Positions 2,576 through 28,818 of a DNA stretch of 64,000 nt are shown one piece after another. Position numbers and translations under genes: made by a program. The stretch comes from Takakia lepidozioides. Its lineage: Eukaryota; Plantae; Bryophyta. The first letter of the stretch is position 1. Each line of letters begins with the position of its first letter. Location of the stretch: positions 12,338,001-12,402,000 of the forward strand of contig CM060734.1 in NCBI GenBank assembly GCA_030704615.1, written 5' to 3'. The notes under the pieces were generated by a model. That model was given only the letters and a program-made list of their open reading frames with translations, did no database searches and was not told where the DNA came from.

Positions 2576-3967
2576 TCATAGCATGCGGGGCCTTCTAGCT
2601 TGCCTCACACCAAGCCATTTTGCAGCTGGCTTACTGGTCCTCCCTGATGAGTTACTGATCCTCCCTGCTGGTTTACCGGTCATCTCAGATGGTTTAGAAA
2701 CCCTTCCTGATGGTTTGCTTTCTCCCCCCGACGGTGTACTGACCCTCCGTGATGTCCGGCAAGAACCCCTGGTCTGTTTAAACCCTTGAAGTGCTGCTGG
2801 TGACTCCCCAACGTCGTCCTCATCTTCAATGTCAGCTTCTAGTTCAATCACCTCATTTACGTCAGCGACCTCGCTTTTCTTGCTGTGAGTCTTTTCTCCT
2901 TTTGTCTTGGCCTTCTGATCTGGCAGTGAACCTTCCTCATCACTGTGCTCGAAAACCACAACCTCCTCCTCTTTGACTTGTCTCTTGCGTTTGCCAGACC
3001 GTGCTGCCTCAACGACCTTCAATTATGTGTCCTCTTTGGTGCCTTGTTTGACTCTCTTGCACCGCACCACATCAAGAACAGCTGCATCTTCTTGGTTCAT
3101 CTCCTCTTTGATTGTTTTACGAAGTTTCCTGGATTCAGGCGTCATTGATTTTTTCCCGCTTGAGCTCTTTTCCACTTTCTCTCTGGCTGGATACGATGCA
3201 GTTGACTTCTTAGTGGGACGTTTCATCTCTTTCTTCTCTGCCGCCAATGTTCTCCCTTCCGTCGGTGCTTCATCTGCATCCTGGGATGCTGGGTCCTGCT
3301 CAGAGGCCCTTACAATGTGGGTCCTGAATTTAGTCCTAGAAACGAGCTCAAACACGCATGCATCTCCATCTACCAAGTTATGGTCCAGCGAGAGGCCTCG
3401 CCATCCCCCACTCAGTCCCACCTTTTTCGCTAGATAGATCGTCTCCCATTCCATATCTTGCTCATCCTGCAGCATAATTCGGTCATCTTGTAATGGCAGG
3501 CGCACCTTGCAGAAGGCGGCCGGCAACCCGAGCCAAAACCCACTCGCTGTATGTGAGTGTAACATTGATTTCACGATGGAGGGAGTCTCTAAGCCTTTGG
3601 TGATTTCTTCAGCAGCTTCAATGGCTGCCATGCGAGCCTTATCAGAGAAGTACCGGCGAGGGAGACATTGTTTGTCTCCCCTGGACCCACACCTTGCCCG
3701 CAGCCCAGAAATCTCAAAATGGTCTTTGTAATCAACAACTGGCTTGGCAGCCACTCGAGAAGACCGCCTCTGCTTCATGCCTAGCTCCTCAAGGGAGAGG
3801 CATCTTTTCTTACATGACCGCGCAACTGTTGCACTGGATGGACATGATGACTTGGTCAAGCTCTTGGACAGTTCCTTGAGGCCAACCTCTAGCATACGTT
3901 TCTTGTTTTCTTCGATTCTCTTCCGGCGAACGTCCTCATACGATGACGAGTTTGCATTTGGTCCCAT
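2576..3967 (-). CDS. B3 DNA-binding domain protein (At3g19184/At5g42700-like REM family); 314 aa to a TAA at 3023-3025, with the frame open for another 148 codons
   Basis: N-terminal YEDVRRKRIEENKKRM and RRSSR motifs. B3 core PSIVKSMLHSHTASGFWLGLPAAFCK...YLAKKVGLSGGWRGLSLDHNLVDGDACVFELV. No intron interrupts the coding sequence. Confidence 0.9.
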
Positions 3968-5160: not shown

Positions 5161-8100
5161 ATGCCAATATGTGGGGTGTTGCTGCTACTGGTGGCGTTTC
5201 TGGCTTTGTGGCCGGGCGGTGAAGCAGACTCTAATCTACCAACATACACTCTCGGATTCCTATCACCTTCAGCCGACTCTGCCATCCCTGCTAGCCTTGC
5301 CACTGAATGGTGCGTCTCCGGCCATATCAATTAGTGCTACTACAGAATATCAAGAACGTTTCCTGTTGGATCAATGACGGTTTGTGTAAGAGCAAATCTT
5401 CCATGTTGATATAAGATTTTTCCTGGGAAGGTGAGACTGGATGGTAATGCGAACATTATGCTCTCCATTGCAGCAAGCCATTGGCGCTTTCCTTCATTTG
5501 AGTTTCCTGTCCCCGGGTATTCAATAATAACAGGGGAGAGTGTTAACGGATATTTGTCACTCCCAAGAGGCCCTTACCACAACCGATTTTTTCTCCTTTG
5601 TATTTACTTCTTTGTCCACTTTTGAGATTTTGTGAGAATGACCTGCATTGGAAACTTAACTTAGTTCGTGCTCAATTTTGTTCATGCATGGGCTGAATTT
5701 AAGATCTCTATAGGGTATAACAACTTTGGTGGTTTATAAATAGTGCATATTACTGTAAAGATAGAGGCTTTGTATAGTGACACATATTTTGAGCAAATGC
5801 TCTCCTGTCCCTTAACCTGTTGGAAATCTCACTCTCAAATTAAGCCGGTGACCTGATTCCAAATGCAGGTTTGAGGGGAGGAGCAGAGAGAGAAGAGGGC
5901 TGTGTGAGCATACCATCTAATGTTTTGAAAATATGTTAAATGTGAGAGCCTTGTATTGATAGACCCATGGGATGTAGCCCCTTGTGGACATTGAACCCCA
6001 TCTGCTCCTCTTGTAAGAAGTATGGCATCGCCAAACATTGTAGGTTTTTTATTTCCCCACATGAGTATTAGTGCATCTTTCTGGAGAAATAACAGATCAT
6101 AAATTATTTATCCTCTCTACAGCAGTTGGCCAGAGTTCAGCTTTTGAGTCAGGTGTAGACAATGTGTTACCTTTAAAGGCTTAACATACGTACCCAACTT
6201 GACAGACCACAACACAACATCCATACAGATACTCTTGGTTCTGGAGATGGACACAAAGACTCATCGCATTGACTCCAAAGCCCAATAAAAACTTGTTAAC
6301 CAGTTAGAAATGGCTCAGTTCAATTTAGATTCATGGGGTGGATGCACCGAACAGTGTGGTTCAGAACATGCCACATGTAAAGCCACCTATTTCGAAAAAC
6401 TCAGGATGTTCCACTACCTGCAGACCTAATAAATTTCTTACTTACCTTCTGTTGCACTTACAGTGGGTGCAAAGATTGTCTCCTGGTGCTTTTGATTGCT
6501 ATGCATTGTCACACATAAGTCGCTCTGTGGACGTTATGACTTTTTCTCTTCCTGTTACAGCATTCCTCTCTCCAAGCCAAGCATGGGTCTTGGGTAGCAA
6601 TATTATAGAGTGAAACTACTACTCTCTTTCTTCTGTCTGAATTTGAAACAGATTATTTGCCACTCTTAATAGCGCAAGCGCAGACCTTCAGGCACTGCTT
6701 CTGTACTGTCCTGGTTCCCCTTGTCCTACCTTTCCTTCGTTCTCAACTGTTTGCGGCATTGACCACAATTCCTGGTAAGCAAATAACAATGCCTCCCTCA
6801 TCCTACTGAGTCCTCCACACCATATACTCTAGTCTTGAAGGCTTTGGCCATGATGTGTGGGGTTATTTGGCAGGCAGTCAGCATTCCGCGTAGCAGTGGA
6901 GGTACTCAACTCAGAAAACCGCCCATACAGGCTCACAACCCAATCGGAACTGAGTGAATGTGATTATGCAGGAGCTCGACGAGGGGCGTCTATCCTGGTG
7001 GCCCCTAGTACAAATCCGCCACTAATTGGTGCTGTTGGACCTGCCTGCACTGGGGCGGCCATTGCAGCTGCTGGGATTTTTGAGGAAAACAATCTTACCC
7101 TTGTTTCATTTGCTGCCACAGGGGAGCCTCTTTCAAGCAGAAATATGTTCCCTACCTTTTTCCGCACAGTGTAAGTCCATGGTGGCCTGTTCTGGTGAAG
7201 TCCAATTTGAGAGGTGGTTATGTTTCAGCTTTTTAGTTCTTTCAGTGCTTGTCTGCGCATTGATGGTTCAGCCTGATTCATTGGCTGGACCTTGAAGCAT
7301 GACTGAATCAAGTCATCCAGCTATGGTACATATGGGACAAGGCAGCAGTCTGGTAGCTGTCATCATGTCCATATTATTAGTCTAATCACTTCACTTCACA
7401 AGCTTTGGACAGACTGAAGTTCTGGAGTCTGTCTGATTTGTATATGTTGCTTGCCAATTGCAGATATAGTGACCTGCATCAGGCTGCAGCTGTGGCAGCA
7501 AGTGTGAGTGCTCAATGCACCCTCTTTCCCCCTACAGCTAATCTGAGAAAATTTCCTTCAGATGGTGGGGCCCTCAATTTAGGGTCATTCCTGGAAATGG
7601 TTGCCCTTTTTTATTTTTTTTCCTTCTCTCGTGGTCTTATGTTTCAGCAGCTAAAAGGACCATTGTATATTCCCTGTGACAAGAACTCCAGGGCAGGTCT
7701 CCAAGTTGCCAGTTGATTACCATGTCATAGCTGTACAGCATTCTGAAGACTGTTTGAAGCGGCGGTGCAGATTGCTAAGCTGCAGATGACCAATGTCACA
7801 ATCCTATCCACTCAGGATTACTACAGCATGAATCTGGCTGGTAATATTAATGAGGTCTGTTTCAACTCTTTGTTGCTGTTTGCTGTTTTTCATTAATGAG
7901 ATGCTCAGCAAATAAGGTTCTGACGGTTGTGTCCACCATAGTCGGCTTCCAGAATCTTCAATTCTGGCTGGATAACACAACTTTGGGAAAAGAATTGTGT
8001 TTTTTGTTTGTCTATTGAATATGGTCGCTGTGTTGCAGAAACTCATCCTAAAAGTCTCTCGTGACAATGATTATCACTTGGTGGCAGGTGTCATAAGCGA

Positions 8101-11100
8101 TGCTCCTACAGTGCTGTCTGTTTCAGCATTGGTTATTGTCTCCTTAGCTGTGTGAATACTAGATTCACCATAGGTTGTCATAACTTGACTGTGTTAAGTT
8201 GTGCTTGGTTGTAGAGTTGTACCCCTTGACAAGCGGCTCTTTGTTTGTATTGTTTGATGAGCCTGTATTGCTGGTAATCTTGACGTGCAGTCAGTAAATG
8301 GGGCAATCTCCATCCGTACGGAGCTGTTGGATTTTGGGGAGAACAGTACAATTGACACTGTCCAGCTAGGCAATATTCTGAACACTGTCCAGCCAAACGC
8401 CTTTCTTATCATGGTTGTGCATCCCCTCGAAGCACGTGACATCTGGCAAACAGCCTTCAAATTGGTAACATGTGTCAACTTCTGAAACAGCAATTTATAC
8501 ATGTTTCTGGAAGTTTATTTGAGTTTCCATTTGCAAATTCAGTTCTGTCACCGATTTCAGCAAGGGTTGAGAGATTTCCCATAGTAGATACGCAGACAGC
8601 AGTATTCCAACACATGTTTACTTAAAACATAATACCTATCAAGTCTTAAAAGAGCAGCGCTAAATAAAACTATACCAGCCACAGAAGACAGTGGAGCATG
8701 GATGATTGTACCAGTCAGTCTCCTTACCATAACTATCTTAACATATGACCTAGACTTCGAATGAATCTACATGGTTGCATGTTGCCGAGACTTTGTAGTA
8801 GAGTTTATCATGTTCTTGGATAATTGCTGCCTTAAGGAGTATTTCTTTTTCATTCTAACTAACAAACTTCACTTGTCTGTCTTACCATGCAAAGAGAAAA
8901 ATGGAGTTTCCCTGGTGGTACTTAGGCACTGATGGAGTAACAGCCTTTGATCCTTCCAGTGAAGATTCAACAGGTAAAGTGTCTTGATGGTTGTGTCATG
9001 GTGCTTATATCAGTTGGCAGTCTCTGAGATCTCTGTTGCTGGACATTGTCTTGGAGGTACTGTTCATAAAACTGGGTGGACAGAGCACTAAGTATGCCTT
9101 ATGGCTGATGTATCTGCCAGAATCTGCATTTGTGAATGCGTTGGTGGGAGAGATCGGGTTGTCTCCTTATGGTAAATCTCTCCTTATAATCTCCTTCATA
9201 TCTTGTGTGTAAAACTCCTGCTGTCTTGCTATGCAAGTGGTTGTGCAAAACTGTATCCCAAAGCTGGATTGCCAAGACGGAAAGGAGGCATAGTAAGAGA
9301 GAAAAGGGGTGGGGGGATGGGTATGCATTTTATAATTTGTTGCTCCCTTCTCTCCCTCCATCATCTTTTTATTTTCTGTATCTTCTTTACTTGATTGATA
9401 GGAGTGATGGATCTCTTTAAATTTCATTCTGCAGGTGGAGACTATTCAGGCGACTCCTCTTGTGACAAGTTCTACACCTACTGGCAAAAAGCTAGCTACC
9501 CAGGCTTTCCATCCAGCAGCCAAAATAAGTCGCGCTCATATACACCCTATCTGATCGATACAGTTCGAGCGTATTTTGAAGTCTGTGACTCACTTGTGAA
9601 AAGCAACCTGCCAATCACGCCTCAAAATGTATTATTGGCATTCAATGGCTCTGGACCCGGGACGCCGAACTTCCAAGGGTGCACTGGACAAGTTGCGTTT
9701 GACCCAGAGACAGGCAGTCGGAGCACTGTGGCACAACCCCCTATATATGACCTTGTCACACTCACACAAACCGATTGGGAGGTACATGTATTGGTGACCT
9801 GTGTTTTTGGTTGCTTCATTGCTAGCTGGTACATTGACGAGACTTCTAGTCCATACAGCGAGAATAGACATATTTAGTTTGTAAGATTACGGCTTTGGCA
9901 GGGGCTACTGTCTCCCTCTACTTCCCTCACTCTCCTTGTAAAAGCCCTTCACAAAGGTAGTGTATGTTCCCTTTTGTTCTGCCCAAACTGTGCATGAGGT
10001 CTATGGTCACGAGGGTATGGCAACCATCTTATGAGTGCATTCTCTCCTTATAAAATCAATTTCTCATTCTAACCGCATGGAGCGGATTTATGCTGCAGGC
10101 CAAAGGGCGGATACAAAATCAGACTTTCGTGACATTGCAAACATTGTCAAGGCCTGGCAGTCAATTCGGGCCTAATTCGGTAACACCAATATCTCTTCTG
10201 ATTTGCGTAGGACCTTCCTTTTTGCATGGATTATAACTTTTGCAATCCACCTTGCGTGGGATTTTAGTATGTTGGATCAAACATGGAGAGATGAAAATAT
10301 CACCTTTGCTGTTGCAGCATGGACAACTCGACCCCCTTTGATTTGGGCGAAATTCCCACAGCTGTACTGGGTGGCACAGCAGTATTCTTTCTGCATACTT
10401 GCAGGTCCTTCACCCCTTAGTGTTAGGGGTTGAAATCACGATTGCTGTTTTTCAACTGTCTCTTCGCTGTTTTGATGATGATGAAGATAAGCTCTTATCA
10501 TCCGCAGCTAAAATTGATGCACTTGGATTAGATTGTACACATGTGGGTGTGTAGGTGCACCTGTAGTGAGTAATAGATGGTTGCCCCTCTAGTGGTCACA
10601 AAATCTGTAGTGGTTTTTTGTGGCCAGGATAGAGAGAGTTGTTCTAAGAGTACTTCACTTTCTTTGGCCTCCTGGGCCTGCCCCCTGTTTCGACGGAAGA
10701 GACAAAGGGGAGGACAATGAAAGGAGGACATTCTAGATAGTCCCACTACCATTGGGGAACACCTCCGCACAGTAATAAGACTCATATGGAGAAAAATAGT
10801 TGAGAGAGAGATATGAAATGTAGTAAAGTGACAGTTCCCAGGAAGATACTGATTTCCCTGGTGCTGGTTGTGGTCACCTGAGCTTGCCTTAGTGCTCAGT
10901 CACAGCCAAACCCATCCAGTTAAAAGGGAATTGATTACACTTTGGTGTAAGCAATAGCATTGGCTTCAACTAAAAACTAGGAGGTCGCATCCAACCCCGC
11001 TACTTTAGCCCTTAATCTGGAAGTAGATGTAGCCTATATAGCTTTGTGAGCGCTCACATTGCCGATTACCCTGTCAAGGATACGGGGGAAGGAAAGAAAA

Positions 11101-11807
11101 GAAAACCCAAGATAGAATGAGAGAAACTTCATAACATCTAGGGGCCAAAAGGGTCATCAAAGAGAATGTGCTCAAAAGATGTTGGAAAGAGGGAGCAGAC
11201 ACTACTTCTGTCAGGGGCTCATTTCAGTAATGGAGGTCATTGGAGAGTGCAATTGCTCGTTGTGTGGGCAACCCGAAGACAATATTTTCTGATTCACTGT
11301 CCGGGGTACTCTCACCAGAGAGAAGCTCTCCTCCAATCTATCAAGAGAATTGTGCCTGCACCTATGTTTACCAACTTTGAAAGTCTCGAGGCTGAGCCAA
11401 AAGCCCAGGCCCTTCTGAGGCCTAGTTACTGGACAAACCACACACAGCAGATTGATGCTTGTGTGAAAGGATTTCTAGAGGATATCTGGAAAACCCGAAT
11501 CAATGTCCTTTATGAAGGTAAGTCTTACTACCGACGTCAGCCCTTGACTGAGGTAGGTTCTGTCCCTTTTTGTTCCGTTCAAACTGGACGCGGGGTCAAT
11601 GGCCACAAGGCTACGGCAAACAACGTCTTATGAGTACATTCTCTCTCTCTCTCTCTCTCTCCAATGTTCCACTCAAACTGGGCGCTCGGTCAATAGCCAC
11701 AAGGCTACGGCAAACAACGTCCTCTCTGCTTCTGTTTACTGTTCAAAGGAGGCTTCCTGCCCTGAGTTTAAATTTCAGTCTGGTGCCGAGAGTGGGTAGA
11801 CCCTTGA

Positions 11808-11842
<35 letters not shown>

Positions 11843-14800
11843 CACATAGCATGTCAAAGCTAGACAAGGAAACACTAAGCACAGTGTGCCATGTTTGCCT
11901 CTTTTTAACGACATCAGACAGCCTAATCTAGGCACCATCAAACTGTCTCTACCCAGATCTGCCTCCATACCTCCCTTTACATATCCTTGCTGGAAAACCA
12001 GCTTTTAGGTGTACAAAGTGGCAAGCAGATGCACACTAGGTAGGCCCTTCTCAGAAACAGATCTGCCTCCTCACTTTCATATTATAGGAAGCGATAGTAG
12101 AAGTAGGAAGACACAAGTGTCTCCTTAAAAGTAACTCCTTTCCATGTAGGTACAAGCTCATAGATCCATCAAACCAAATAGAGCAAAAACAGCAATAATA
12201 TGTGTACAATCAACACATACAAACAGATTTGAGGTTTGAGAGAGCTCAAAGCCTCACTCCCTTAGTCTCTTGCCCTTAGTAGCATTTCCTGCATCAAAAG
12301 AAGGTGAAGTGGCATCACCTGGATCCATCACAGCCAACCAACCAACCAACAGGTTAGTGATCCCTGTGGAACCCCAGGCTTAAACCCCTTCACATTTGTT
12401 ATCAATGTCATCCCTGCAACAGGTCATACTAGCAAAGAGAGGAGAGGTAACATAGGTACAGAACTCAGTAGCACCTATTTCAGCCCATGCTCCAGAGGGA
12501 GGGGGGGTGGTCTCATGTCTGTAAGCACCCATTCCCAAAAGGAAGGTGTCACTGGAGCCAAGTACTCAAGCAAGGGGACACAGAGGCCTTTGGTTTGCAA
12601 AAGTATTCAAAGAATCAGAGTAGAGCTAATCATGTCCATGTAAGTAAGCATGACAACAGCACCTATTCCCAAAAGGAAGACCAAGTACTTAAGCAAGGGC
12701 ACATATAGAAGCCCTTGGTTTTGCAAAAGTATTCCTAGATTCAGAGTAGAGCTTAGTCAAGTCCATGTAATTTCCTCATAGTGTCAACTCTCTTTGTGTT
12801 GCCATCCTAAGCAGCCCATCACAGTGTTGAAGGAGTCTGAATGGATACCTTGCTTGTAGACATAGTGTAGTCAGCTCCTTCAGCTCTTGCTTGCTCCTCT
12901 TCCAAATGAGAAGAGTGGCCAAGCATACTAACCATGTAGGGCAGCAGCTTTAGGTTAAGACCTCTAGGGTGAACCCTAATGAGTCACCCTCATGAGTCAT
13001 CCTAGTGAGTCATCCCGTTATACAATTCCCCGTTCCGTTCTAGACAAAAAATCTGAATAGAATAACGGGATCAGGCAATTCTTGATTGCTGTCTATAAAA
13101 ATCTTAGCAACATTTAAGGAAAGAGGGAGAGAGAAAAATTTCCTCAAGCCTCTCATTTTCAGGCAGTTCTTGAGTGTTGTTACAAAGAACATATCCACAG
13201 TCAAGTATAGAGAGAGAGAGAGATTGTACTCAAAAGACGTTGTTTGCCGTAGCCTTGTGGCCATTGACCCCGCGCCCAGTTTGATTGTCAGGGACTGACA
13301 TTGGTAGTAAGACTTACCTTTATAAATAGAATTGATTCGGGTTTTCCAGATATCCTCTAGAAATCCCTTCACACAAGCATCAATCTGCTGTGGGTGATTT
13401 GTCCATAAACTAGGCCTCAGAAGGGATCGCCACTGTGCTTGATAAGCTCGTTGACTATGCCATCAGGACCACCTGCTTTATATCCATTTAGATGTTCAAT
13501 TGCTTCCACAATCTCAGAAGAACTAATGGGAGCGTTGTAGGCTTTTGAAATATACTCCAGTTTATCAGGGCTGTTTTGAATCATAGGAACAGTTTTACCA
13601 ACTGTGTCCTTCCATTCATCAGAGGACCCCTCACTGTTAGACCTAGAAGTTCTGCCAAGGATACTGTAGTGGGTTTCAAAGATTTTGACAATGTCAACTG
13701 ATGAAGTTACCACTGCACCCTTAGTAGTCTTCAGCGCTTGTACTTGCTGACAGCTTTTCGGCTTGTACAAGCGTTGAAGGGCCAACCAGAATCTCTTGTC
13801 ATTACCACCATGGTGGTTTGAGTTTATTTCACTGTATAACTTGTCCCAGTAGAATTTCTTCTGAGCCCTTACAAGCAGATTGATATCTTTACGGATCTGG
13901 TAGTACCTCGCCCACAATTCTTTGTTGGTTTTCAAATTGCAGCACTCTTTATAAAGGACTCGTCTCTCAGCTATCTTGAGCTTAATCTCATTGGTCCACC
14001 AATTAACAGCTCTACCGCAGACAATTAGTTTCCTCCCAATGATCTTGTCAGCCGCAGAGGAGACGAAACTCTCCCAAGAATCCACTGCTCTTTCGACTTC
14101 ATTTCTTGCATTGTCAGCGCGAGACTGAAGGTCTTGGAGCGAATGGACAAAATGAGGAAGAGCCTCTTGCAAGGCCTGGACATACTCAGCCTTGACGTCT
14201 TCATTATGGAATTTTTCTATGCGCCACTTCCGAATCGAACGTTTCACAGATCTCTTGGTGTTGGGAAAACACCTTTTGATCTCAGTCCAAACCAGGAAGT
14301 GGTAAGAGGTACCAATATCAGTTCTGTCGATCAACACATTGGCACTCTGGGGAAACAAATTTTTGTCCATTATGATATAATCCACAATGGAACGTTCCCC
14401 AGTTTGGGCTTTCTCACGAGTCCACTGCACTTGGTCACCTTTTGCCCTATTGTTCAAGGCCAGAAGCTGAAGCTCTTCCAGACAGTAATTAACCGTCTGC
14501 CATTAGAGTTCAGCTCGTCCTCACCAAAAGGCCCAATGATATCATCCTGATGGAGACCTTTACCCACCCGGGCATTGAAGTCACCCAATAAAATCACCTG
14601 ACCTTTGGCAAGGAACGAAGCACAGTCTAGCTTTACATCTTCGAAGGCTTTGTCTGCGTCAGCACTAAGGGTCCCCTCTGTGGGCATGTAAACACAACCC
14701 ACAAAGAGGTCCTTCGTACTCATGCTGCCCTTCAGTTTCAGCTTTAGCCAGATACTATGCTCGTACCTCAAACCCTTGTTGATAATTTCACAATTGTCAA

Positions 14801-15234
14801 ACAAGAAATCACGGACAAAGAATCCAACCCCTTTTTGACCGCGTTTGGCAGAGGCTGCCTTGAGAGTACACATCTTACCTGCCCATTTATAACCAATGAC
14901 ATCTCCAAAGAGTTTATCCGACGTTTCCCATGTTTCTTGCCCAGCACAGATATGAATATCATTAGTCCGAAGAACTTGTCCCACTTCGAGTTGTTTCCTT
15001 TGGTTAGTCAGCCCTGAGAAGTTGAAAGTGGCCAGCCGCAAGCCAGCCCTTTGCATGTGAATTGTTTGTCGTCTAGGTAGCTTAAGATTGCTCCTGGACG
15101 GCCAACCGTTCTGCAAAGGGGGGACAGTTACCCCCTGTGTAGATTTTTCTCGTCTTGTGTAAACTTTGAGAATTGGTAGACCATTCAGAGTACCAAATCC
15201 TTCACTTACACGACGTCCGCACACTTAGGGACAA

Positions 15235-15281
<47 letters not shown>

Positions 15282-15643
15282 CTTCCCTCAACCTCTCAAC
15301 CCTTTCCTGTGCAATGAAATTTACTGGAATCTTGCTAGCTTTTGAAGATATCATTGTGCTATGCTTTGGAGTACATCTTTCAAGGTCAACGCATTGAAAA
15401 GTCATTCATGGCAATGCGCTTTCAAGGTCAAGGCATGGAAAAGTCATTCATGGCAATGTGGTGGGTTTTGTTTGGCAGGCTTATTACGCACCTAATCCCA
15501 ATGGCACCCGGGGTAAAGTTATAGCAGGGACTCTTTTTGCAATTATTGCAGTCCTGGCTGCCGTCGCAGTTGGAGCTTACGTTTACATGAAAAAGAAACG
15601 AAGGGCGTATCAAACTGCATCATATGTGAGGGGGTTTGAGTAG
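5161..15643 (+). CDS. Single-pass type I membrane protein with an extracellular Venus-flytrap (ANF_receptor / periplasmic-binding-protein type I) domain, 488 aa, 10 exons
   Basis: Exons 5161-5309, 6874-7170, 7464-7503, 7771-7854, 8291-8464, 8895-8973, 9121-9171, 9435-9781, 10099-10179 and 15479-15643. All introns are GT-AG; the total is 1467 nt in one open frame. Signal peptide MPICGVLLLLVAFLALWPGGEA. Domain motifs: SECD..GAVGPACTG, LVSFAATGEPLSSRNMFPTFFRTVYSD, WWYLGTDG, FQGCTGQVAFD..GSR..YDLV. TM segment VIAGTLFAIIAVLAAVAVGAYVYM; tail KKKRRAYQTASYVRGFE. Confidence 0.85.
11280..11726 (+). mobile_element. Two tandem 5'-truncated 3' ends of an APE-type LINE, each ending in (CT)n
   Basis: ORF end YFLIHCPGYS...IWKTR...GRGVNGHKATANNVL* followed by (CT)10 at 11641-11660. 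A second ~60-bp copy (caaactgggcgc..gccacaaggctacggcaaacaacgtc) follows immediately and ends in ctctct. Highly similar to 13224-13425 on the minus strand. Confidence 0.8.
11811..11839. repeat. (GA)n microsatellite
   Basis: About 14 GA units, read directly from the sequence. Confidence 0.95.
12524..12770 (+). repeat. Degenerate ~130-bp tandem duplication inside a probable TE-derived intronic segment
   Basis: agcacc.attcccaaaaggaag...ccaagtact.aagcaaggg...tttgcaaaagtattc...tcagagtagagct...gtccatgtaa occurs at ~12524-12642 and ~12658-12770. Confidence 0.75.
13224..15237 (-). mobile_element. Internally deleted non-L1 LINE (APE endonuclease, RT start, 3' end; RTE-X/CR1-superfamily-like) flanked by (TC)n on both sides
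   Basis: APE motifs LATFNFSGL, QETW, GVGFFVR, CVYMP, LLGDFNARVG, NSNGRRL and SIVDYII, then the RT N-terminal motif KAGGPDGIVNELIK. At ~13420 this is fused directly to the 3' end, so the RT core is missing. Frameshift at ~14455. (GA)20 at 15238-15277 and (AG)7 at 13209-13223. Confidence 0.88.
15379..15460 (+). repeat. 42-bp tandem duplication just upstream of the last splice acceptor of the receptor gene
   Basis: ttcaaggtcaa(c/g)gcat(t/g)gaaaagtcattcatggcaatg occurs twice. Confidence 0.85.
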
Positions 15644-17799: not shown

Positions 17800-20700
17800 A
17801 TGAATGACTCTTCATCAGAGGCTCCTTTGGAGCAACTGCAGGCGCCACATAATCTGGAGGCAGATTCTGAGCAGGCAGAGAGCGCTGAGCGAATTACGGA
17901 GGTGCAATCACAAAATGGTGATGACAACATTAACAAGACTGCCTCTTCAGACACACAATGGGAAGAGGTGAAGCTATTCAAACTTTAGTATGCTCATGTC
18001 CAGGGATGCAAAGGAATGGTTTAGTTAATGCTTTGTTTGCACATACACATCAAATGGGTGACACCAAGATGACCCACTGAGGCATGAAAGAGCAAAACCC
18101 CAACTTTTGTTGAAATTGAAGCTGGAGGGAAAATACAAAATCAGGTCAGAAATGCATAAGCATACACACATGGGGTTGCAAGTCAGACAGGGAGAGACAG
18201 ACAAACACTGGTAAGATGGGAGCGGTACTGAGAAGAAGGTGAAAGAAATGCTGAGTTGGGAGGGGAACAGCATCGGGAGTGGGAGGGAAGGGTTCACCAA
18301 GGCAGACGCTACCTCTTCTGATGGCTTACACAAGTTGTCTTCCTATCCTGCATGATCTGCAGCAAGTAAAAGCTCTACAAAACCAGGTTGTAGAGCTGGA
18401 AGCAAACCTGAAAAAGGCAGAAGGAGCTGCTCAAGCTGCTATCAAACTGGCTGGAAATGGTGCAGAAGCTGAGAGCCGAGCATCTGAACTGGAGTTAAAG
18501 CTGCAGGATGGCGAGGCATTGATTGGTGAATTGAAGACCCTCGCAGCATCCCTGGAGGCAAAGGTCAAACAGATGGAAAACCAAGAGCCTGTGGGCGACG
18601 AGAAGGCTACATTGGTAGCAAGAGTGACAGAAGTGGAGGGTCTTTTGAGTGCTGCACAAACCCAGGTATGACAGCAGAAAGAGAGGCAGTTAATCTGTGC
18701 TATAAGCATGTAAATTGTGTTTCTATTTGAAATGAAAAGTTTATCTCCCTCAGAGGGAAAACCAGGCATCCCGTGGCTGTAGGTGCTTTCTCTAGCCTTC
18801 GAAGCCTTCTCCAAGCCTTGTTGAGCAACATGTGTCTAATTGGAAGCTGGTTGTCTAGTGACCACAAGAAATGTCATAGGAGACTCAGGCTGCACATTCC
18901 TGCACTCCTACTAACTATAAAATGTTGTCACAGCTTGACTCTCAGCACGCAGAACTTGCTACATCAGCAGTCAGAGAGGAACATTTGAAGGAGACTCATA
19001 TTAAAGTGAGTCAGCTTGAGTCTGAAATTACCTCCTTAAAGGAAACAGTGGATGAATTGGATGGGAAGTTGGCGACAGCAACTGGAAAACTTGAAGAGCA
19101 TGAAAGCAGTGCCCTGACCTTCACAGAGAGGTGCAATGAACTGGGGGAGAGGGTTAAAGCTGCAGAAGAGAGGGCTGCCCACCATGAGAATCGGTCCAAA
19201 GAGTTGACTGACAGATCTGTGGAGCTTGAGAGTTTACTCACAGGACATCAAACACAGGCCAAGGATGTTCAAGAGAAAGTCACTCCTTTGGAAGTGAGGG
19301 TAGCAGAGTTGGAACAGGATCTCAAATTAAAAGGAGAAAAGCAGGCTGAACTGGAAGAGAGAGTGAAAGATGCAGAGAACAGGGCTGCTCACCATGAGAG
19401 CAGTGCAAAGGACATGAGTGACAGATCTGTGGAGCTCGAGAGTCTATTGGCAGTACAGCAAAAGGATTCTACAGAGAAAATTGGCCCTCTGGAAACCAGA
19501 GTGGCTAAGCTGGAACAGGAACTACAAACCTTACATGAGATGAAAGATGGACTCAGAAAGACTGCCAAGGCTGCAGAGGAGAGGGCAGCTCATCATGAGG
19601 GCAGTGCAAATGAATTGAATGACAGAGTTTTGGAGCTTGAAGGACTGCTGACCATGCACCAATCACAACTGAAAGATGCTGGAGAAAAACGTGATCTTTT
19701 GGAGGCTGAATCGGCTGAGCTGAAACAGGAACAATGCAGCTCCCAGCAGAAGGAAGCAGAACTTAAAAAGACTATGATGGAAAGGGCAGCTCACTATGAA
19801 AATTCTTCAAAGGAATTTAATGACAGAGCTTTGGAGTTTGAAGGCCTCATGTCCACACACCAAACACAAGCAAAAGATGCTGGAGAGAAACTTGCTCTTT
19901 CCGAAGCCAGGGTGGTTGAGTTGGAGGAGGAACTGAAAAACATGCAAGCAAGAGAGACCAACCTGGAAGAAAGGGTAAAGGCTGCAGAGGACAGGGCTAT
20001 ATACCATGAGGGCAGTGTAAAACAGCTGACTGATAGGACTATGGAGCTCGAAAGTCTATTGGTCACACACAAATCTCAGGTTGAGCAGCAGGAAGCAAAA
20101 GCTGCCCATGTGGCAGAGCTGGAACAGGAGCTGGAGAGCTTGCAGGTGCAGTTCTTCAAACTGTAAAGTCATTTCATTATTTTGGCTGATGCTGTCAATT
20201 GATGTTGGAAGCATGTCACTGTCTTTACCAGAAGGTGTTTGGAGTTCCGAGGAGAAGGATGTTGACTTATGTATATAAGGTGTTCATATCACAGAGTGAG
20301 AGAGTATAAACAGATGTACACACCGAGCGTCTTTTCTGGTGAGTGCAGGGGAGAACACCAGACCAGTGGTGACGCAATCTGCTGGCGTTGAAAGCTGGTG
20401 AAACTCTTAAATTGTCTGCCACAGAGTTTTTACTACTTTATGCTAGTCTAGCAATGTAACTCTTTCTGCTTTGTGTGGCTGGGACGACTGAATGATATGG
20501 CGCTTGGACAAATAGATTGCCTGGAAAATTGGTTACATTCTGGCAGCGGTTGTGGCAGGTGTGGGATATTCATCCTGAATTCCGATGTCAAAGTAGATTA
20601 AGCTTTGGAATATAACCTTGTCTGATGTCTGATGTCAACTTAACAGGAAAGGCAAGCTGAATTAGAAGAGAAGGCGAAGACAGCAGACGAAAGAGCTGCT

Positions 20701-23700
20701 CTCATTGAAGACAGTGCAAAGCAATCAACCACAAGAACATTGGAGCTCGAGGGTTTACTGGCTGCACATCAACTTCAAGCTAAAGTAATGGAGGCTGAAC
20801 TGGCAGAGAAAGCAAGAATTGCTGAGGAGAGGGCCTCCCACCATGAGGGCAGTGCAAAGCAATTCAGTGAAAGATCTCTTGATCTTGAGGCCCTACTTAC
20901 CACACACCAAAATCAGGCCGCAGAGAGGACTGCCTCCTTGGAGGCTTTGCTGACCACAACTCAGAAGACGCACGCTGAGGTGAATGCAGACGCTGCAGAA
21001 CTCAAGGAAAAATTGAGGGAAGCTGAAGAGAGGGCAGCACAAGCACTTAGTAAGGTGAGCATAATCAGACTTACACAACACAGGTGCCTGAAGCCTGCAT
21101 GTATACCGTGTTATATTCGAGAGCAATTCCAAATTCCACATCACCATCGAACCTTTTTCAATACAACCAATTTGCAAGCAGGACGGTCAGAAAAGTGAAT
21201 ATAATACTAAACAACTCCACACTCCTTAGACCTTAAACAGAGTCACAAAATATGCAAGTAGAAAATCTTATAAATTTAAAACCTTGGCAACATATTTGAT
21301 TAGTAGGAGACAGCTCCTGTTGACAGTTTCCTGTGAATTGGAGCTTTGGTGCCGTCTTCTTCAGATAAGATGTTGACCTGGATTTTGACTTAGGTTCCTC
21401 CTGTGCAATTGTGAAGGCAGGAGAAGCAGATGCAGTTGTAGCTGAGCTGCAGCTTTCAGTGGCAAAGATGAAGGAAGCAGAAAGTGTTGCCTTGGAACTG
21501 CAGGAGAAATTGGTGGCTCTGCAAGAGAGAGCTGATACTGCCGAGGGCCAGTATGGGGCTGCAGTAGAGAGCTTGGCAAAGTCAAGAGAAGAGTTTGGTG
21601 GACTCCAAACATTGGCAGCACAGTTGGGACATGAAAGGCAGCAGCTTGAATCACAGGTGTTCCCTTGTCTCTTTCCTCTTCCTCTGATGATTTCCTGACA
21701 TAACAGCCAAAGCTGTCTTCCTACCTTGCTGTTTCTCCAAAATCATAATGAGATAGTGCCTATTTTTTGAGGTACTGCAGTGAATAATCTTTGCAGTGAG
21801 ATACCTTCTTTACAGCCATGAAAATGACTATGACGGCACCCTCCTCACTTGGTGATGCCAAAAGGCTGTTACCCTCCGCGGGTCTAAATTTGCGGCGAGT
21901 TTTCCAATTGATGGTATGGTGTGCGGTTTTACATGGAAATTTGGAATGTCAGGAACAGTAAAGGAACAGGCTTCAGGCAATGGTAGTGGCTCCATTCTAC
22001 TCTCCCCTCTCTTTTCTGCTCCATCATAAGCAGGTGCACCTACAAGGGTAAGCAAAGTCTATCTCTTTTTTCTGTAGACTGGCTCATTCCATTGAGTCCT
22101 TACATATCTAGATTCTGTAGTCGAGCACTATGTATATAATGCGCACAGTACCAACCCTTAAGGTTGGCTTCACAGGTGGGGCAAATGGCAAACATTGTTC
22201 AAGAAAACGAAAGCTTGCATAGCCAGGTGACGGACCTACAAGGACAGCTCCAAGAAATTTTGACAAGGGGAGAAGTGGATGCAAATGAGCTCAAGAAAAA
22301 ATCTTTCCGCGAAGCAACTCTTGATGGAGAGCTGCAGGCCTTGAGGTCGCAAGCATCTGAGTTCACTGTTTTACGTTCACGTGTGACAGAGTTTGAGCAG
22401 AAGGTGCGGGAAGCAGAAGCAAAAGATCATCAACAGGTATTTGTGAGACTGTGTTTTAATACTTGTTGAGTATCTGATCACCCTCATCATAAAAGAGATG
22501 AAACTGTGGTATTTTGCTACAAGGCATTTTGAATGTGTTTTGTGTAGACTCGTTGACATGTTTCATTTGCAACCGGGATCCCTTGTTTTGCATGCCCCTC
22601 CCTTTGACCACCAAATCTGTTGTGCACTGTGGCATGCAGAATGCTAGCTTAGTAAGGGAGCAGCAAAGAGTGACAGCAGCTCAAGACGAAATTTCTGCAC
22701 TGAAGGATCAGCTGGCCAATCATACCTCCCAAGTACATTCTCTTGTGTTCCTCATATGCATTCTTTGCTTTTAGCTTGCAGTGGAACCTTGTTGGATGAC
22801 TAGTGAACTGTCAATACGTATTTTCCTGGTCACCTGTAGACTTTTGCAGGAGGTACAGGTGTAGATTTGAGAACATGAATGGAGACAAGGGAAGGCAATT
22901 TGTTGCCCTCTGAATGTACCCACACCTGTATGTCAAGTATTTGGGGTAAAGATCCAACAGTAGGAACAAACGTTTACTTACATAGCTTAACATTAAGCCA
23001 TGCTTTGAGATAAAAGCTTGGGTCTGGAAAAGTCTAGATGGAGGTTTTGATCAAACCATGGTAAATCAGAGGCAACTAGTTGTTAAGATTTGGAATGCGA
23101 GACTAAACCTGGAACTTTTGACCAAGGTAAGTTTTAAGAGTGAAGGTATGGAGATTTGTAGGCCTGCTAAGTGGACGCATTCTGAGCTTGAAGTACAATG
23201 TTCAGAATGACTGGCAGTGGTTGATCTTAAACTAGGGTTTTGTGAAGTGCATAGACAGGATTTGTAGTTAAACTGACTAACCTCAAAAGTAGTGAGACCA
23301 ACACACCATTTCCAAACTGATGTACATCAAAATGATAGGTTCACTCACCAGTCAACACAACACAGAGAGTTGTCATGGAGTATGACATGTGTTTTAAGTT
23401 TTGGGTAGAAACACATGCTCCTTGTATCTTAACTTTACTTGGATTTCTTCAATGTCATGTGGGTGCAGGGGGAAGGGGAGCTGGAGGCCACAATCCTGGA
23501 TGTTACAGAGAGAGTTCGAACTGCTGAGTCTGAGGCTGCTAGTGCACGGCAGCTTGCCTCCGTCCTAGAGGTACTCTTTCTCTGACATAAGAGGGAAGGA
23601 ATTGTAGCTGTCTTGTTTTTGAAAGATAGAAATGGGTGTTATGAAGAAATATTTCTATAGTTTCTCATAAGTAAGCATCTGATGGAGCTGAGTTCTGGCT

Positions 23701-24685
23701 CAGGCACAGGTTGCAGGACTGCAGGAGACCATTACAGCTCTCGATAGCAAAGTAAGGGCTGCTGAAGCTGAAAAAACAAAGCTTAAGAAGGATAACAAGG
23801 ATTTGCGCAAGGCTGACTCTGACAAGGAAAAAGGATTTGCTGAGTTGGTAAGTGAAACTTGCTGGTGGGTTTGCTTGCTGTATGGTTCAACTGCCGAAGC
23901 AGGTTACATTGTGTCACAGATAGAGGAGCTAAGTGTTGAGATTCCTAATGGGTGAAGACTGCTGGTGAGAATATTGTGCTCGAAAGCTTTCTGGCTACAG
24001 ACATGTTGCCCGGTTGGGACAAAGCTGTACAGGGTGAAGGACAAGGAGGGGGCAGGAAAAAGGGCTGCTACATGAGCAGGATTGTTAGCCGCATAAGATT
24101 GTTTGAAAGGAAGGATAAATCTGCAGGTTTCACTTAGTGAAACATTCCGACTAACAGAGCTACATTAATCGGCATCCCTCAGTGGTTGCAGATGTGGTTG
24201 TACATGTCAGAGTGACCCTTAACTATCACTTCTATGTTATTAAGATCAACTGGCAATCAGAGCAAATAGTGACACGGAAGGTCATGATGAATCCCTCATC
24301 TTGGTTTGGCCTCAACCTTGGAATCTCATCAGGCTTGCAAGGACAGATAATTAGCTACGTGTCTGACAAGGCTTTCTTTTTGCTTGATACTCTGCAGAGG
24401 TCATCATTGCAGGCCCTGGAAGAGAACCAAGGCAGTGTGAATGCTCGAGATCTGGTCAAGACCCCCGTACAGACACCAACTGGGAAAGCACGGAAGAGAA
24501 AGGGGAAAAGTGACAAATCATCCGAAGAGGAAGAGGCTGCTGCCCTGACGGCGCTCATCAATGAGAAGGGAGTGAAACCTGTGCACTCCCACACCCTCAG
24601 TGGTGGTCTACTCGCTGTGCTGATTGCCATCTCTCTCGCTTCATTCTTCCTTGGTTTCTGGCTCCCAAAGAGAATCACTTTTTAA
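17800..24685 (+). CDS. Long coiled-coil tail-anchored protein, PICC/PICL-like (At2g32240 family), ~1072 aa, 10 coding exons
   Basis: Exons 17800-17967, 18363-18665, 18934-20145, 20647-21054, 21417-21656, 22176-22436, 22640-22732, 23469-23570, 23704-23847 and 24398-24685, all phase 0. E/K/Q/L/A-rich heptads throughout. The C-terminus VNARDL..TPTGKARKRKGK followed by TM GGLLAVLIAISLASFFLGFWL and a short PKRITF tail matches the SRD / basic patch / TM end of PICC-type ER proteins as I recall it. Confidence 0.75.
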
Positions 24686-26334: not shown

Positions 26335-28818
26335 ACTTAGCAGGCTCAAGGCTGCCAATCTCCCAGTCAATTTCAGTGCTGCTCTCTCCAGCCTTCTCAA
26401 TCTGTTCAATATCCCAGTCAATATCTCCATTGCCATCCTCAAATCCTCCTGTCCCAACGTCTGCCAATGTTCTAGTCAATGCCTGTACTGTCCATCTCAA
26501 ATCCTGCAGCCTTTTCAGGGAGAGCATCCTGTTCAACATCGCAGTTGATGGGGGCATTGCCCCTCTGAACCCCTGTAGCCTGTTCTAAGGTACTGGAGAA
26601 ACCCTCCGCCTCTACTAGAGTAGCCTCCTCATTACTTCCACGGCCAACAGGGGGGTGGTCATGGAGCCCTTGAAGAGTTACTAACACCAGCCCAGACTCA
26701 GCCTGCATTAAAGATCCTCCATTTCCTCACCACTGAAAGTATCATAGCAGGGACAAAACCGATAAGATCTGAACATTTAGTGAAATGCTATTTGGCCAAA
26801 CAATCCACTGCCAAATGGAGAAGTATGAGAGACATACCGCAAGGCTGGTGTGTGCATAAGAGACAAAGGTTTGATACAACTCCAAAGCTTCACCCACACT
26901 ACTGTCGCAAACTGCTCTTACAACCTCCACGAAGACAGTGGGAAGGCTTTTGCCCAGTGCCTTCAGTTCTTCTCTCACATCATTGCCCTGCAGGATGCCA
27001 CAGTTAGCTGCATAGCTATACTTTTTCTTTGGACACAGGTAAGCTGCTTCTAGTCTTTTCACTAGGAAAATTTATAAGGAAAATGTCTTCACATGAAAAA
27101 GATTTTGAAAGAGAATAACAAACCAAAATGCCAAGCTCCTGACAAGCGTGTTGATACTTGATGGCTGATGCAGCTGCATTACACCTGAATTCAGCCTCTT
27201 TTCGTTCCATATCTGTCAGCTGCTGCTGCAACTTTGCTATCTGCTTTTTTTGGTATGGACTTCCACACATAGCTAGTAACCATCTTCAGAGATCATCCCC
27301 TCCAGCATCCAAAGCAAAAAGCAACAAAGTTCCTGTGCAAGTATAAATGCACGTGCAGTTTCATGGGTACATGAGCACTACATCAGCTGTGATGTTTGAA
27401 CTGGCGAACAGCAGGACCCACTTATAGAAATCTTACATCTCATAATTTGTGTGCTGCACCATGAGCTGGGCAGCTTCTCCAAGATGTAACTGTTCCTTCT
27501 CATAGCTGCGCACTTTGCCATCCCACTCACTCTGCCACACAGGTTCGACCGCCACTTAGGATAAACAAAAAGAGCGAACAAACGATAGAGAAAGGTGCCA
27601 GTCACAAAAGGATAATAATTTACAGCGGATCCAGAAAGTCGACCAAAAAGGGTGCGGACCTCTGGTGTGGCCTGCACTACCACATCTCTGATGTGCTTTG
27701 CTTCCAAGTAGCCTGTGCCTGCCCGTCAAGCCCACCCTGCCTCAACCACACAAAAAGCTGCACCTGATATCTAGTCCACCTCTATCCATGGTCATAGGAT
27801 TGGCAGTGCACCACTCACACAGCCATATTCCTCACACTTGTAGAAGCACTGCTCAAATGAACTTCACCCTTTCTAGAAGAAACATCAATAGCAGCACATA
27901 CGTCCAGACCATGAACGATTCAGTGTGCTTTACCTTGGTGGGCTAAAACCCCCAAAGGGCATCCGTAATGGTTAGAATCCAGAAGGATTATCCACTGAAG
28001 GGTATGGCATGGCCAACATTCCCAGGCAACAGTCAGAGGGAACATCTCTATTTTTTCTTTCTAAAACTGCCGATCGAAAAGAAAACATCATCACTAAAAA
28101 CCTCTCAGCAAGACCGAGAAAAGCCTCTAATAAGAGAAGCTGTCTCTCCGTCTCTCTAATCTTAGTTGTGACGCACCCTTCAGGTTATGACACGCCCTCC
28201 AAACCCTACCAATTTTTCAGATCCAACGGAGTATGAAGTGAAATATCCCAGTGCAAGAAGATCACATGAACGAATCAGGACAGAATGTCACATCTGAAGT
28301 ATCACAAATTCAGCCCCGAGTGCCTAGATTGATCCACAATGACAAAGAACCACAATCTTCATAGACTTCACCAATACCTCACGAATGCAGGGTTTTCAAT
28401 TATTGAGGCAACAACTCATTACAGGACATCGGACAAATTAGAACTTACATTCTGGAGTTAGAGTTGATAGCCATGGATCGACACCGCGGCAGGGCAGAAA
28501 GTGCCGATGTAACACGAGACCGCAGAGAGGCAAGCTTCTTATGCCAGTCTGCAGGGATTTTCCGGCGATCTACTAGCCAATCTGCCCACTCCACCTCAAT
28601 TAGATTCATTCACCCAACCCAACACTGTAAAGCATTCTGCGACATGAAATTGCCCAAATCCCATGCATTCAAAGATAAAAATGGATAGCACATAACCAGA
28701 GGATGAACCCGAAAGTGGAAGGAAAAGTGAGACATTGGAGTTAGAACTAACCCGCAAGCTTGGTATATGTGATGTCAATAGGCAGCAGCAACACTGGATC
28801 CTCAACAGACTGCTCCAT
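26335..28818 (-). pseudogene. C53: CDK5RAP3 / C53 (ER-phagy receptor, UFMylation adaptor) pseudogene, 3'-truncated
   Basis: Spliced translation MEQSVEDPVLLLPIDITYTKLADWLVDRRKIPADWHKKL..., GYLEAK..RTLFGRLSG, YEKEQLHLGEAAQ..NYEIPYQKKQI, GNDVREEL..SLP. Defects: exon 2 (28581-28449) is 133 nt and shifts the frame; TAG at 26472-26474 followed by another frameshift; no C-terminal exons found below ~26335. Confidence 0.9.

Follow-up and report, generated by a model that had tools for sequence, protein, structure and literature searches.

A ten-exon gene of the moss Takakia lepidozioides belongs to an unnamed streptophyte family of single-pass Venus-flytrap proteins with a class C-type amino-acid recognition motif

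Gene structure

Examination of a 64,000-nucleotide stretch of the genome of the moss Takakia lepidozioides (GenBank assembly GCA_030704615.1, contig CM060734.1, positions 12,338,001 to 12,402,000 of the forward strand; hereafter the window, with coordinates counted from its first letter) reveals an intact ten-exon gene for a type-I membrane glycoprotein of 488 amino acids (aa), the ectodomain of which is a Venus-flytrap (VFT) domain. The gene lies on the + strand and runs from an ATG at 5161 to a TAG at 15641-15643; its exons sum to 1467 nucleotides (nt) in one open 488-aa frame, and all nine introns are of the GT...AG type. An earlier note on this DNA, made from the letters alone, had proposed ten GT-AG exons and a 488-aa frame, and we recovered the same length and coordinates with the frame open throughout. 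Database searches were queried either with single window exons or with collected homologues, while the joined protein served for checking the frame and for locating residues. The family set to which we refer below consists of 33 collected members, aligned as A1.

Exon 1 (5161..5309, on the + strand like all the others) provides the start codon, a signal peptide spanning aa 1-22, and TYTLGFL as the first strand of the VFT, and aligns with the N-termini of the family members. Exon 2 (6874..7170) encodes lobe 1 of the flytrap, including C79 and C108 (SECD...GPAC), T109, the SFAAT motif with T132, and FFRT, and is the exon that is matched by the Pfam ANF_receptor model. It is followed by exon 3 (7464..7503), a 13-aa exon that carries YSD with D152 along with an invariant glutamine and that has counterparts of 13 aa in Sphagnum and 12 aa in Physcomitrium at the same position. 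Exon 4 (7771..7854; 28 aa) contains Y180 in QDYYS, and exon 5 (8291..8464; 58 aa) contributes strands and helices of VFT lobe 2; exons of precisely 28 and 58 aa are likewise present in the Sphagnum and Physcomitrium genes. Two short exons then bear family signatures, namely P-W-W-Y-L-G-T-D-G with D261 in exon 6 (8895..8973) and G-E-I-G-x-x-P-x-G in exon 7 (9121..9171). Exon 8 (9435..9781; about 115 aa) returns to lobe 1 and contains C301, C374, YPG, SRSYTPYLID and GCTGxVxFDPETGSR; it is 47-64% identical to the embryophyte members and keeps the invariant columns, and its two cysteines, C301 and C374, likely form a second disulfide. The final VFT beta-hairpin (KGRIQN...LQ.L.RP) and the start of the stalk are encoded by the 27-aa exon 9 (10099..10179), and the remainder of the stalk with an NPNGT sequon, the transmembrane (TM) segment (15518-15586), the tail (15587-15640) and the stop codon by exon 10 (15479..15643). 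The TM segment and tail of exon 10 are 33-46% identical to those of the moss members.

The ten exon translations align in order and without overlap to the 33 homologues; given this collinearity, the ANF_receptor match of exon 2 is not due to chance. Furthermore, the intron positions are conserved between the window gene, with exons of about 50/99/13/28/58/26/17/116/27/54 aa, and the ten-exon genes of Sphagnum jensenii (57/100/13/28/58/26/18/118/26/55 aa) and Physcomitrium patens (58/103/12/28/58/23/17/112/24/55 aa). Several short database fragments stop exactly at ...FFRTV, which is the boundary of exon 2. The join of exons 9 and 10 in the window reads ...FGPNS|AYYAPNPN..., and the mRNA-derived homologue P0057 is contiguous at this point (...FAPNSAYNGPNPN...).

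Two alternatives within this gene model were considered and rejected. A different junction of exons 4 and 5 (7840 to 8295) would give a protein of 482 aa; the homologues have the additional ...NINES... and the pair of 28- and 58-aa exons, and since both the homologues and the exon sizes in Sphagnum and Physcomitrium fit the 488-aa junction, we take the latter to be right. A candidate extra exon at 10320-10405, a hydrophobic open reading frame (ORF) between an AG and a GT, gave no high-scoring segment pair with the Sphagnum member P0058, and the homologues run directly from exon 9 to exon 10.

Protein architecture

The window protein comprises a hydrophobic N-terminus serving as signal peptide and a single LIVBP-type VFT domain, followed by a short stalk, one TM helix and a tail of 18 residues. 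A hydropathy scan detected the signal peptide, one marginal stretch within the flytrap (the GPAC region) and a single C-terminal TM helix of 23 residues (aa 448-470, nt 15518-15586). The stop codon comes 18 codons past this lone helix, and the tail in between (MKKKRR...YVRGFE) has a KKKRR cluster that is followed by Y-V-R at 15623-15631. There are eight N-x-S/T sequons in all: the seven that the earlier note had listed are present, and an eighth (NES) spans the junction of exons 4 and 5. The cysteines of SECD...GPAC, the TM helix and the short tail were likewise found where that note had placed them, with the tail now counted as 18 rather than 17 residues.

Exon 2 alone is matched by Pfam ANF_receptor with an E-value of 1.2e-12 and 48 bits (cut-off 25.4), whereas exon 10 gave only weak TM-like noise in Pfam. 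The Lig_chan domain, which corresponds to the S1/S2 segments and M1-M4 pore of glutamate-receptor channels, has no Pfam match in any window exon or in the 33 family members; the 7tm_3 domain is absent in Pfam from 33/33 members, in line with the single C-terminal TM of the window protein. No exons for a channel, a seven-transmembrane (7TM) domain, a kinase or a cyclase were seen near the gene among the downstream ORFs up to 32 kb, and those of the ORFs that were searched with Pfam proved to be coiled-coil, CDK5RAP3 and clathrin. The protein thus bears the hallmarks of a type-I membrane protein of the secretory pathway whose ectodomain is a flytrap and which lacks an effector domain.

A conserved streptophyte family

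When 1.84 billion representative proteins were scanned exhaustively by HMMER with exon 2 as the query, 51 matches were obtained at E <= 0.001, the best full-length ones among which are 480-506 aa long; homologues of the same layout are full-length proteins of 463-587 aa. They occur in mosses (at least three genes in Physcomitrium patens, namely P0056, P0061 and P0107, two in Ceratodon purpureus and at least two in Sphagnum jensenii), liverworts (Marchantia polymorpha, in which one gene, MPTK1_1g13780, was found, Riccia and Calypogeia), lycophytes (Selaginella and Diphasiastrum), ferns (Adiantum and Ceratopteris) and the algal class Zygnematophyceae (Spirogloea, Mesotaenium and Closterium). No source-labelled match from seed plants was obtained in the exon 2 scan or in cluster and word-index searches; several short fragments and Logan contigs among the matches carry no organism label. 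The matches of exon 2 that were identified as lying outside the family are bacterial-type binding proteins and flytrap proteins from a coral and from unlabelled metagenome contigs, some of the latter with 7tm_3. Among the scan matches identified by source, Pfam or motif, no plant glutamate receptor-like (GLR) protein was recognised.

The window protein is 50-59% identical overall to the bryophyte members. All 33 members match ANF_receptor in Pfam (best E 9.5e-36), 24 of them also match the overlapping Peripla_BP_6 model, and no other domain was found, which agrees with the architecture originally proposed for the window protein, namely signal peptide, flytrap, TM and short tail without an effector. 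A1 displays an invariant cysteine pair in C...GPAC[ST] and the further motifs SFAAT, FFRT..D..Q, PWWY.G.DG, GEIG..P.G, YPG, SRSY.P.L.D and GC[TS]G...F...[TS]G.R. The window protein matches 58/58 of the columns in which conservation reaches at least 90%; 57 of these lie inside exons, and for the 58th, a tryptophan, the codon (TG|G) is divided between exon 1 and exon 2.

Conservation extends to the membrane-proximal regions. The stalk measures about 25 residues in land plants; that of the algae is longer, at 60-100 residues, and abounds in P, S and A. The TM helix often starts with G-x-I-A-G, and a motif of this kind is seen in 19 of the 33 members. Downstream of a basic juxtamembrane cluster, 25/33 members bear a tail motif of the form [FYM]-x-R-[hydrophobic] within their last 14 residues; in Zygnematophyceae it typically takes the form ...FVRML, often as the final five residues of the protein. 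We know of no explanation for this C-terminal aromatic-x-Arg-hydrophobic motif, which could constitute a sorting signal or a partner-binding signal.

Certain long Closterium records (715-1022 aa) had the appearance of fusions, and none was retained as such. P0029 and P0114 (715-851 aa) have the usual layout with one C-terminal TM and the usual C-terminus, and the proline-rich stretches that interrupt their flytrap midway look like unspliced introns; P0035 matches ANF_receptor only and has no 7TM region.

The names that these proteins bear in databases are uninformative or wrong. They include 'hypothetical protein', 'Receptor ligand binding region domain-containing protein' and 'metabotropic glutamate receptor-like protein E' in the source records, 'glutamate receptor 3.1' and 'glutamate receptor 3.5' as automatic NCBI names for P. 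patens members, and 'ABC-type branched-subunit amino acid transport system substrate-binding protein' for some members in the automatic annotation of JGI. Together these observations establish an unnamed conserved streptophyte family, with several paralogues per moss, of which the window gene is a member.

The amino-acid recognition motif

In the class C G-protein-coupled receptors (GPCRs), the amino-acid recognition motif has five main residues, which in mGluR1 are S165, T188, D208, Y236 and D318 (PMC2680970, citing Acher and Bertrand 2005). Their equivalents in the window protein are T109, T132, D152, Y180 and D261, respectively, with spacings of 23/20/28/81 residues against 23/20/28/82 in mGluR1, and the five positions are invariant or nearly so across A1. 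In the HMMER alignment of the family profile with mGluR7, the segment from GPAC[ST] through SFAAT and the D of FRT..D to the Y of ..YY/YG is free of gaps, and WYxGTDG pairs with WVGSD. The earlier note had claimed by manual alignment that the mGluR1 residues are all kept, and both the ungapped mGluR7 alignment and the matching spacings bear it out. As judged from these alignments, the cleft keeps the five residues by which the class C flytraps hold an amino acid at its alpha-amino and alpha-carboxyl groups. A ligand resembling an amino acid is thereby supported; the motif gives no indication as to which one.

Fold and placement among flytraps

An AlphaFold2 model was computed for the homologue P0057, which is 59% identical to the window protein, with A1 as the alignment (pLDDT 88, pTM 0.82). 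Foldseek matched this model to the ectodomains of mGluR5, mGluR8, mGluR1 and CaSR with E-values of about 1e-22, and placed NPR-C at rank 42. An independent structural scan (VIA Z-scores) ranked binding proteins of the LivK/LivJ type highest, with Z 35.6-36.8 and a root-mean-square deviation (rmsd) of 2.4-2.6 over about 345 residues at 14-18% identity; the match to LivK (Z 36.8 over 346 residues) marks the bilobed alpha/beta fold of type-I periplasmic binding proteins, in which the chain crosses between the lobes. They are followed by mGluR3 (Z 35.2), the amino-terminal domain (ATD) of Arabidopsis AtGLR3.4 (PDB 7lzh; Z 35.1, with 20% identity, the highest in the list), T1R2a (Z 34.5), GABA-B (Z about 31) and NPR-C (Z 29.5, rmsd 5.2). 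The Z-scores are effectively tied and therefore the fold assigns the family to no single branch.

Sequence comparisons give a similarly divided picture. Exon 2 by itself, in a phmmer search of solved structures in the PDB, scores T1R2a (E 1e-4), GABA-B2 (1e-3), GABA-B1 (2e-3) and mGluR5 (8e-3) above AtGLR3.4 (0.16). With the family profile, the best solved relative is the AtGLR3.4 ATD, aligned over both lobes with an E-value of 3.5e-25; the mGluRs come next (about 1e-19), their alignment covering lobe 1 and a portion of lobe 2. By protein-language-model features the nearest clusters are those of vertebrate NPR-C (0.94), which is not among the top 60 sequence-profile matches of the family. The suggestion that the protein resembles LivJ, natriuretic-peptide receptors and GABA-B more than GLRs thus stands in part: it holds for exon 2 alone with respect to GABA-B, and it fails for the family as a whole, the profile being closest to AtGLR3.4 and the structural scores being tied between LivK, mGluR and GLR3.4 with GABA-B and NPR-C lower. 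We read the family as an old, separate ANF_receptor lineage that is roughly equidistant from the plant GLR ATDs and the class C flytraps. Three observations exclude the alternative origin that had been raised, a GLR truncated recently or in this species alone: members occur from Zygnematophyceae to ferns, the gene structure is conserved, and the identity is 20%.

Expression and selection

Relatives of Takakia express and splice the family gene. For P0057, three contigs of 1.7-2.2 kb that stem from two JGI samples and an SRA run carry the coding sequence without interruption, and P0056 of P. patens is present on 305 contigs shorter than 5 kb; given that the genes have nine introns in the genome, these contigs represent spliced mRNAs. 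The family is also under purifying selection. Rates of nonsynonymous (dN) and synonymous (dS) substitution, obtained by the Nei-Gojobori method with the window exons compared one by one, gave a dN/dS of about 0.1-0.2 for the family, the values for three pairs being 0.16 for P0061 versus P0107 of P. patens (dN 0.12, dS 0.75), 0.17 for P0056 versus P0057 (dN 0.31, dS 1.78), and about 0.23 for the window gene versus Sphagnum P0058 (dN 0.34, dS 1.5, the latter near saturation).

The last intron

Intron 9 (10180..15478), which separates the flytrap exons from the TM exon, is 5,299 nt long and swollen by debris of non-LTR (non-long-terminal-repeat) retroelements; in Sphagnum and Physcomitrium the equivalent last intron has 205 and 101 nt, respectively. 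Within it lies a minus-strand non-LTR copy at about 13417-15224, consisting of a pair of ORFs (13417-14457 and 14454-15224) with an Exo_endo_phos endonuclease domain (E 4.8e-6). Inverted copies of 76-139 nt of the 3' end of this element are found at 11410-11654 versus 13209-13425, being 90-96% complementary, and long (GA)n tracts occur at about 11810-11840 and about 15240-15280. A similar stretch resembling the 3' end of the element appears to be present in intron 8 (at about 9960-10050).

Proposed function and alternatives

In light of the above we propose, with a probability of roughly 0.6, that these proteins are single-pass, flytrap-type receptor-like proteins that bind an amino acid or a similar zwitterion and act, probably, via a partner membrane protein. 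The ectodomain would face the cell exterior or the lumen of the secretory pathway, and the flytrap would close on an amino acid or similar small zwitterion; by analogy with other eukaryotic flytraps, the protein is probably a dimer. Given that the tail cannot signal alone, a partner is probably needed, and the signal would probably be relayed to it through the conserved TM helix and tail, for which the G-x-I-A-G at the entry to the membrane and the aromatic-x-Arg near the C-terminus are candidate points of contact. The protein might thus be regarded as a flytrap counterpart of the leucine-rich-repeat (LRR) receptor-like proteins (RLPs), with the same logic of an ectodomain that operates with an adaptor kinase. 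We prefer such a partner-dependent role mainly because TM and tail motifs that persist from algae to ferns are more than one would expect of a segment that serves only as an anchor.

Several points weigh against this proposal. The support for expression and splicing comes from relatives, and the model of the window locus itself is built on sequence and homology; similarly, the fold was predicted on the 59%-identical homologue P0057 and not on the window protein, and the reading of the putative pocket derives from alignment and not from the coordinates of the model. The debris-filled 5.3-kb intron 9 could hinder the joining of the TM exon, and read-through into this intron would stop after 18 codons, leaving a soluble flytrap. 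Finally, where the family motif has a hydrophobic residue, the tail of the window protein (Y-V-R-G-F-E) has a glycine.

Among the rival explanations, the protein might serve in ligand capture, whereby an extracellular amino acid would be bound and then removed, buffered or handed over, either by endocytic clearance in the manner of NPR-C or by presentation to a transporter in the manner of a tethered solute-binding protein. That ligand-bound transport proteins of the LivK/LivJ type are the best structural matches, that NPR-C clusters lie nearest in language-model features and that the short tail carries a conserved motif which could be a sorting signal would all fit such a role; we nevertheless consider it unlikely, since the conserved motif at the TM entry suggests that the helix packs with something. 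To our knowledge, moreover, no eukaryotic importer uses a type-I binding protein. Less plausible still is that the protein forms the flytrap half of a split class C receptor, pairing non-covalently with flytrap-less seven-helix proteins of the GABA-B/GPR156-like type. If this were true, the non-seed streptophytes would have a metabotropic amino-acid receptor composed of separate polypeptides that was lost toward the flowering plants; we know of no class C receptor that is reported to have such a construction. The N-lobe encoded by exon 2 is indeed closer to GABA-B, T1R and mGluR than to GLR, and there is no cysteine-rich domain between flytrap and membrane, as is also the case in GABA-B; however, neither an interaction nor co-expression nor a fused ancestor was found, the long Closterium members being mis-models with retained introns and not fusions, and a range from Zygnematophyceae to ferns without seed plants is a pattern of loss that many gene families have.

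A role as an auxiliary or decoy GLR subunit, in which the ATD-like flytrap would join or compete with the ATD layer of the true GLRs, of which bryophytes have one or two, draws on the AtGLR3.4 ATD being the best solved profile relative over both lobes (E 3.5e-25), on its structural match with the highest identity listed (Z 35.1, 20%) and on the automatic names 'glutamate receptor 3.1/3.5' of the P. patens members. We judge it improbable: identity to the GLR ATD is only about 20%, no plant GLR was among the identified matches of exon 2, GLR3.4 is without the second cysteine of the family pair, and seed plants are rich in GLRs and yet no family member was found there. That the window gene is a non-functional copy, either a decaying gene or a fragment of a GLR or class C receptor that merely looks intact, is suggested by the inflation of the last intron to 5.3 kb by retroelement insertions. 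Given the open frame with all splice sites canonical, the retention of 58/58 conserved columns, the dN of 0.34 against a dS of 1.5 relative to Sphagnum, an exon structure that is the same as in the expressed orthologues, and a stop codon and tail that are homologous to the family C-terminus, this explanation is very improbable.

Genomic neighbourhood

The flytrap gene is preceded, about 1.2 kb upstream and in divergent orientation, by a 314-aa ORF on the - strand (3023-3967) with a B3 DNA-binding domain (Pfam E 3.9e-13). Downstream lies a long, highly repetitive coiled-coil gene on the + strand (about 18279-24685; repeats of the form ...AEERAAHHE.S.KE...R..ELE.LL.), the last ORF of which ends in a hydrophobic segment, such that its product may be tail-anchored; a strong positive GC skew at 18-26 kb coincides with this gene. 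It is followed, both on the - strand, by CDK5RAP3-like exons (26742-27270; Pfam E 2e-12) and clathrin heavy-chain exons (31534-31782; Pfam Clathrin, E 5e-11).

Significance and comparison with known systems

Plants respond to external amino acids, and the GLR channels are the sole flytrap-type candidates for this that have been discussed so far. A literature search, full-text but without most subscription journals, found no description of the family, and no characterised family with the same architecture, which the earlier note had allowed for, came to light. A review of GLRs does not mention flytrap-only proteins (PMC11479355), and a Marchantia preprint, which speaks of only one GLR, is silent on the flytrap-TM gene; reviews and papers count one or two GLRs per bryophyte species. 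The family thus represents a second, separate plant flytrap lineage with an intact amino-acid motif, kept for several hundred million years in the nearest algal relatives of land plants and in bryophytes, lycophytes and ferns. Its recognition corrects misleading database names, such as 'glutamate receptor 3.1/3.5' and the ABC-type substrate-binding protein, and its presence in the tractable models Marchantia and Physcomitrium makes the proposed function directly testable.

With plant GLRs the family has the flytrap in common, but GLRs continue into the S1/S2 and pore segments, none of which are present in the window gene or nearby, and GLR3.4 has GPQSS in place of the GPAC[ST] of the family. 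LivJ and LivK are its top structural matches; unlike them, the window protein is spliced, eukaryotic, rich in sequons and anchored by a TM helix, and has no ABC importer context. The flytraps of class C GPCRs (mGluR, CaSR, T1R and GABA-B) have the same fold and the five recognition residues at matching spacing, and GABA-B2 even has a ...SFAAT...FP.FFRT stretch in common with exon 2; in contrast to these receptors, the family lacks both 7tm_3 and the cysteine-rich domain, and has a single TM. Amino acids activate the Venus kinase receptors of invertebrates, in which a single-pass flytrap bears the amino-acid motif (PMC2680970). The family differs from them in having no kinase domain. In this respect it recalls the plant RLPs, which have an ectodomain, a TM helix and a short tail, and which depend on an adaptor kinase, the known ones being distinguished from the family by their LRR or LysM domains.

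The closest parallel in layout is vertebrate NPR-C (NPR3), which, like the family, combines a signal peptide with a single ANF_receptor flytrap, one TM and a short non-enzyme tail within about 500 aa, along with a lobe-1 cysteine pair of the C...GP.C type. The analogy with NPR-C that had been drawn from the sequence is upheld in terms of layout and of the language-model features. NPR-C is nonetheless not an orthologue, as it falls structurally below LivK, mGluR, GLR3.4 and GABA-B, and the tail of the family is half the length of the NPR-C tail and has a conserved motif of its own. NPR-C binds peptides across its dimer interface, whereas the family keeps the alpha-amino-acid motif within the cleft. 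The fold is known and the layout is NPR-C-like; what is new is a plant lineage in which they are combined with a class C-type amino-acid motif.

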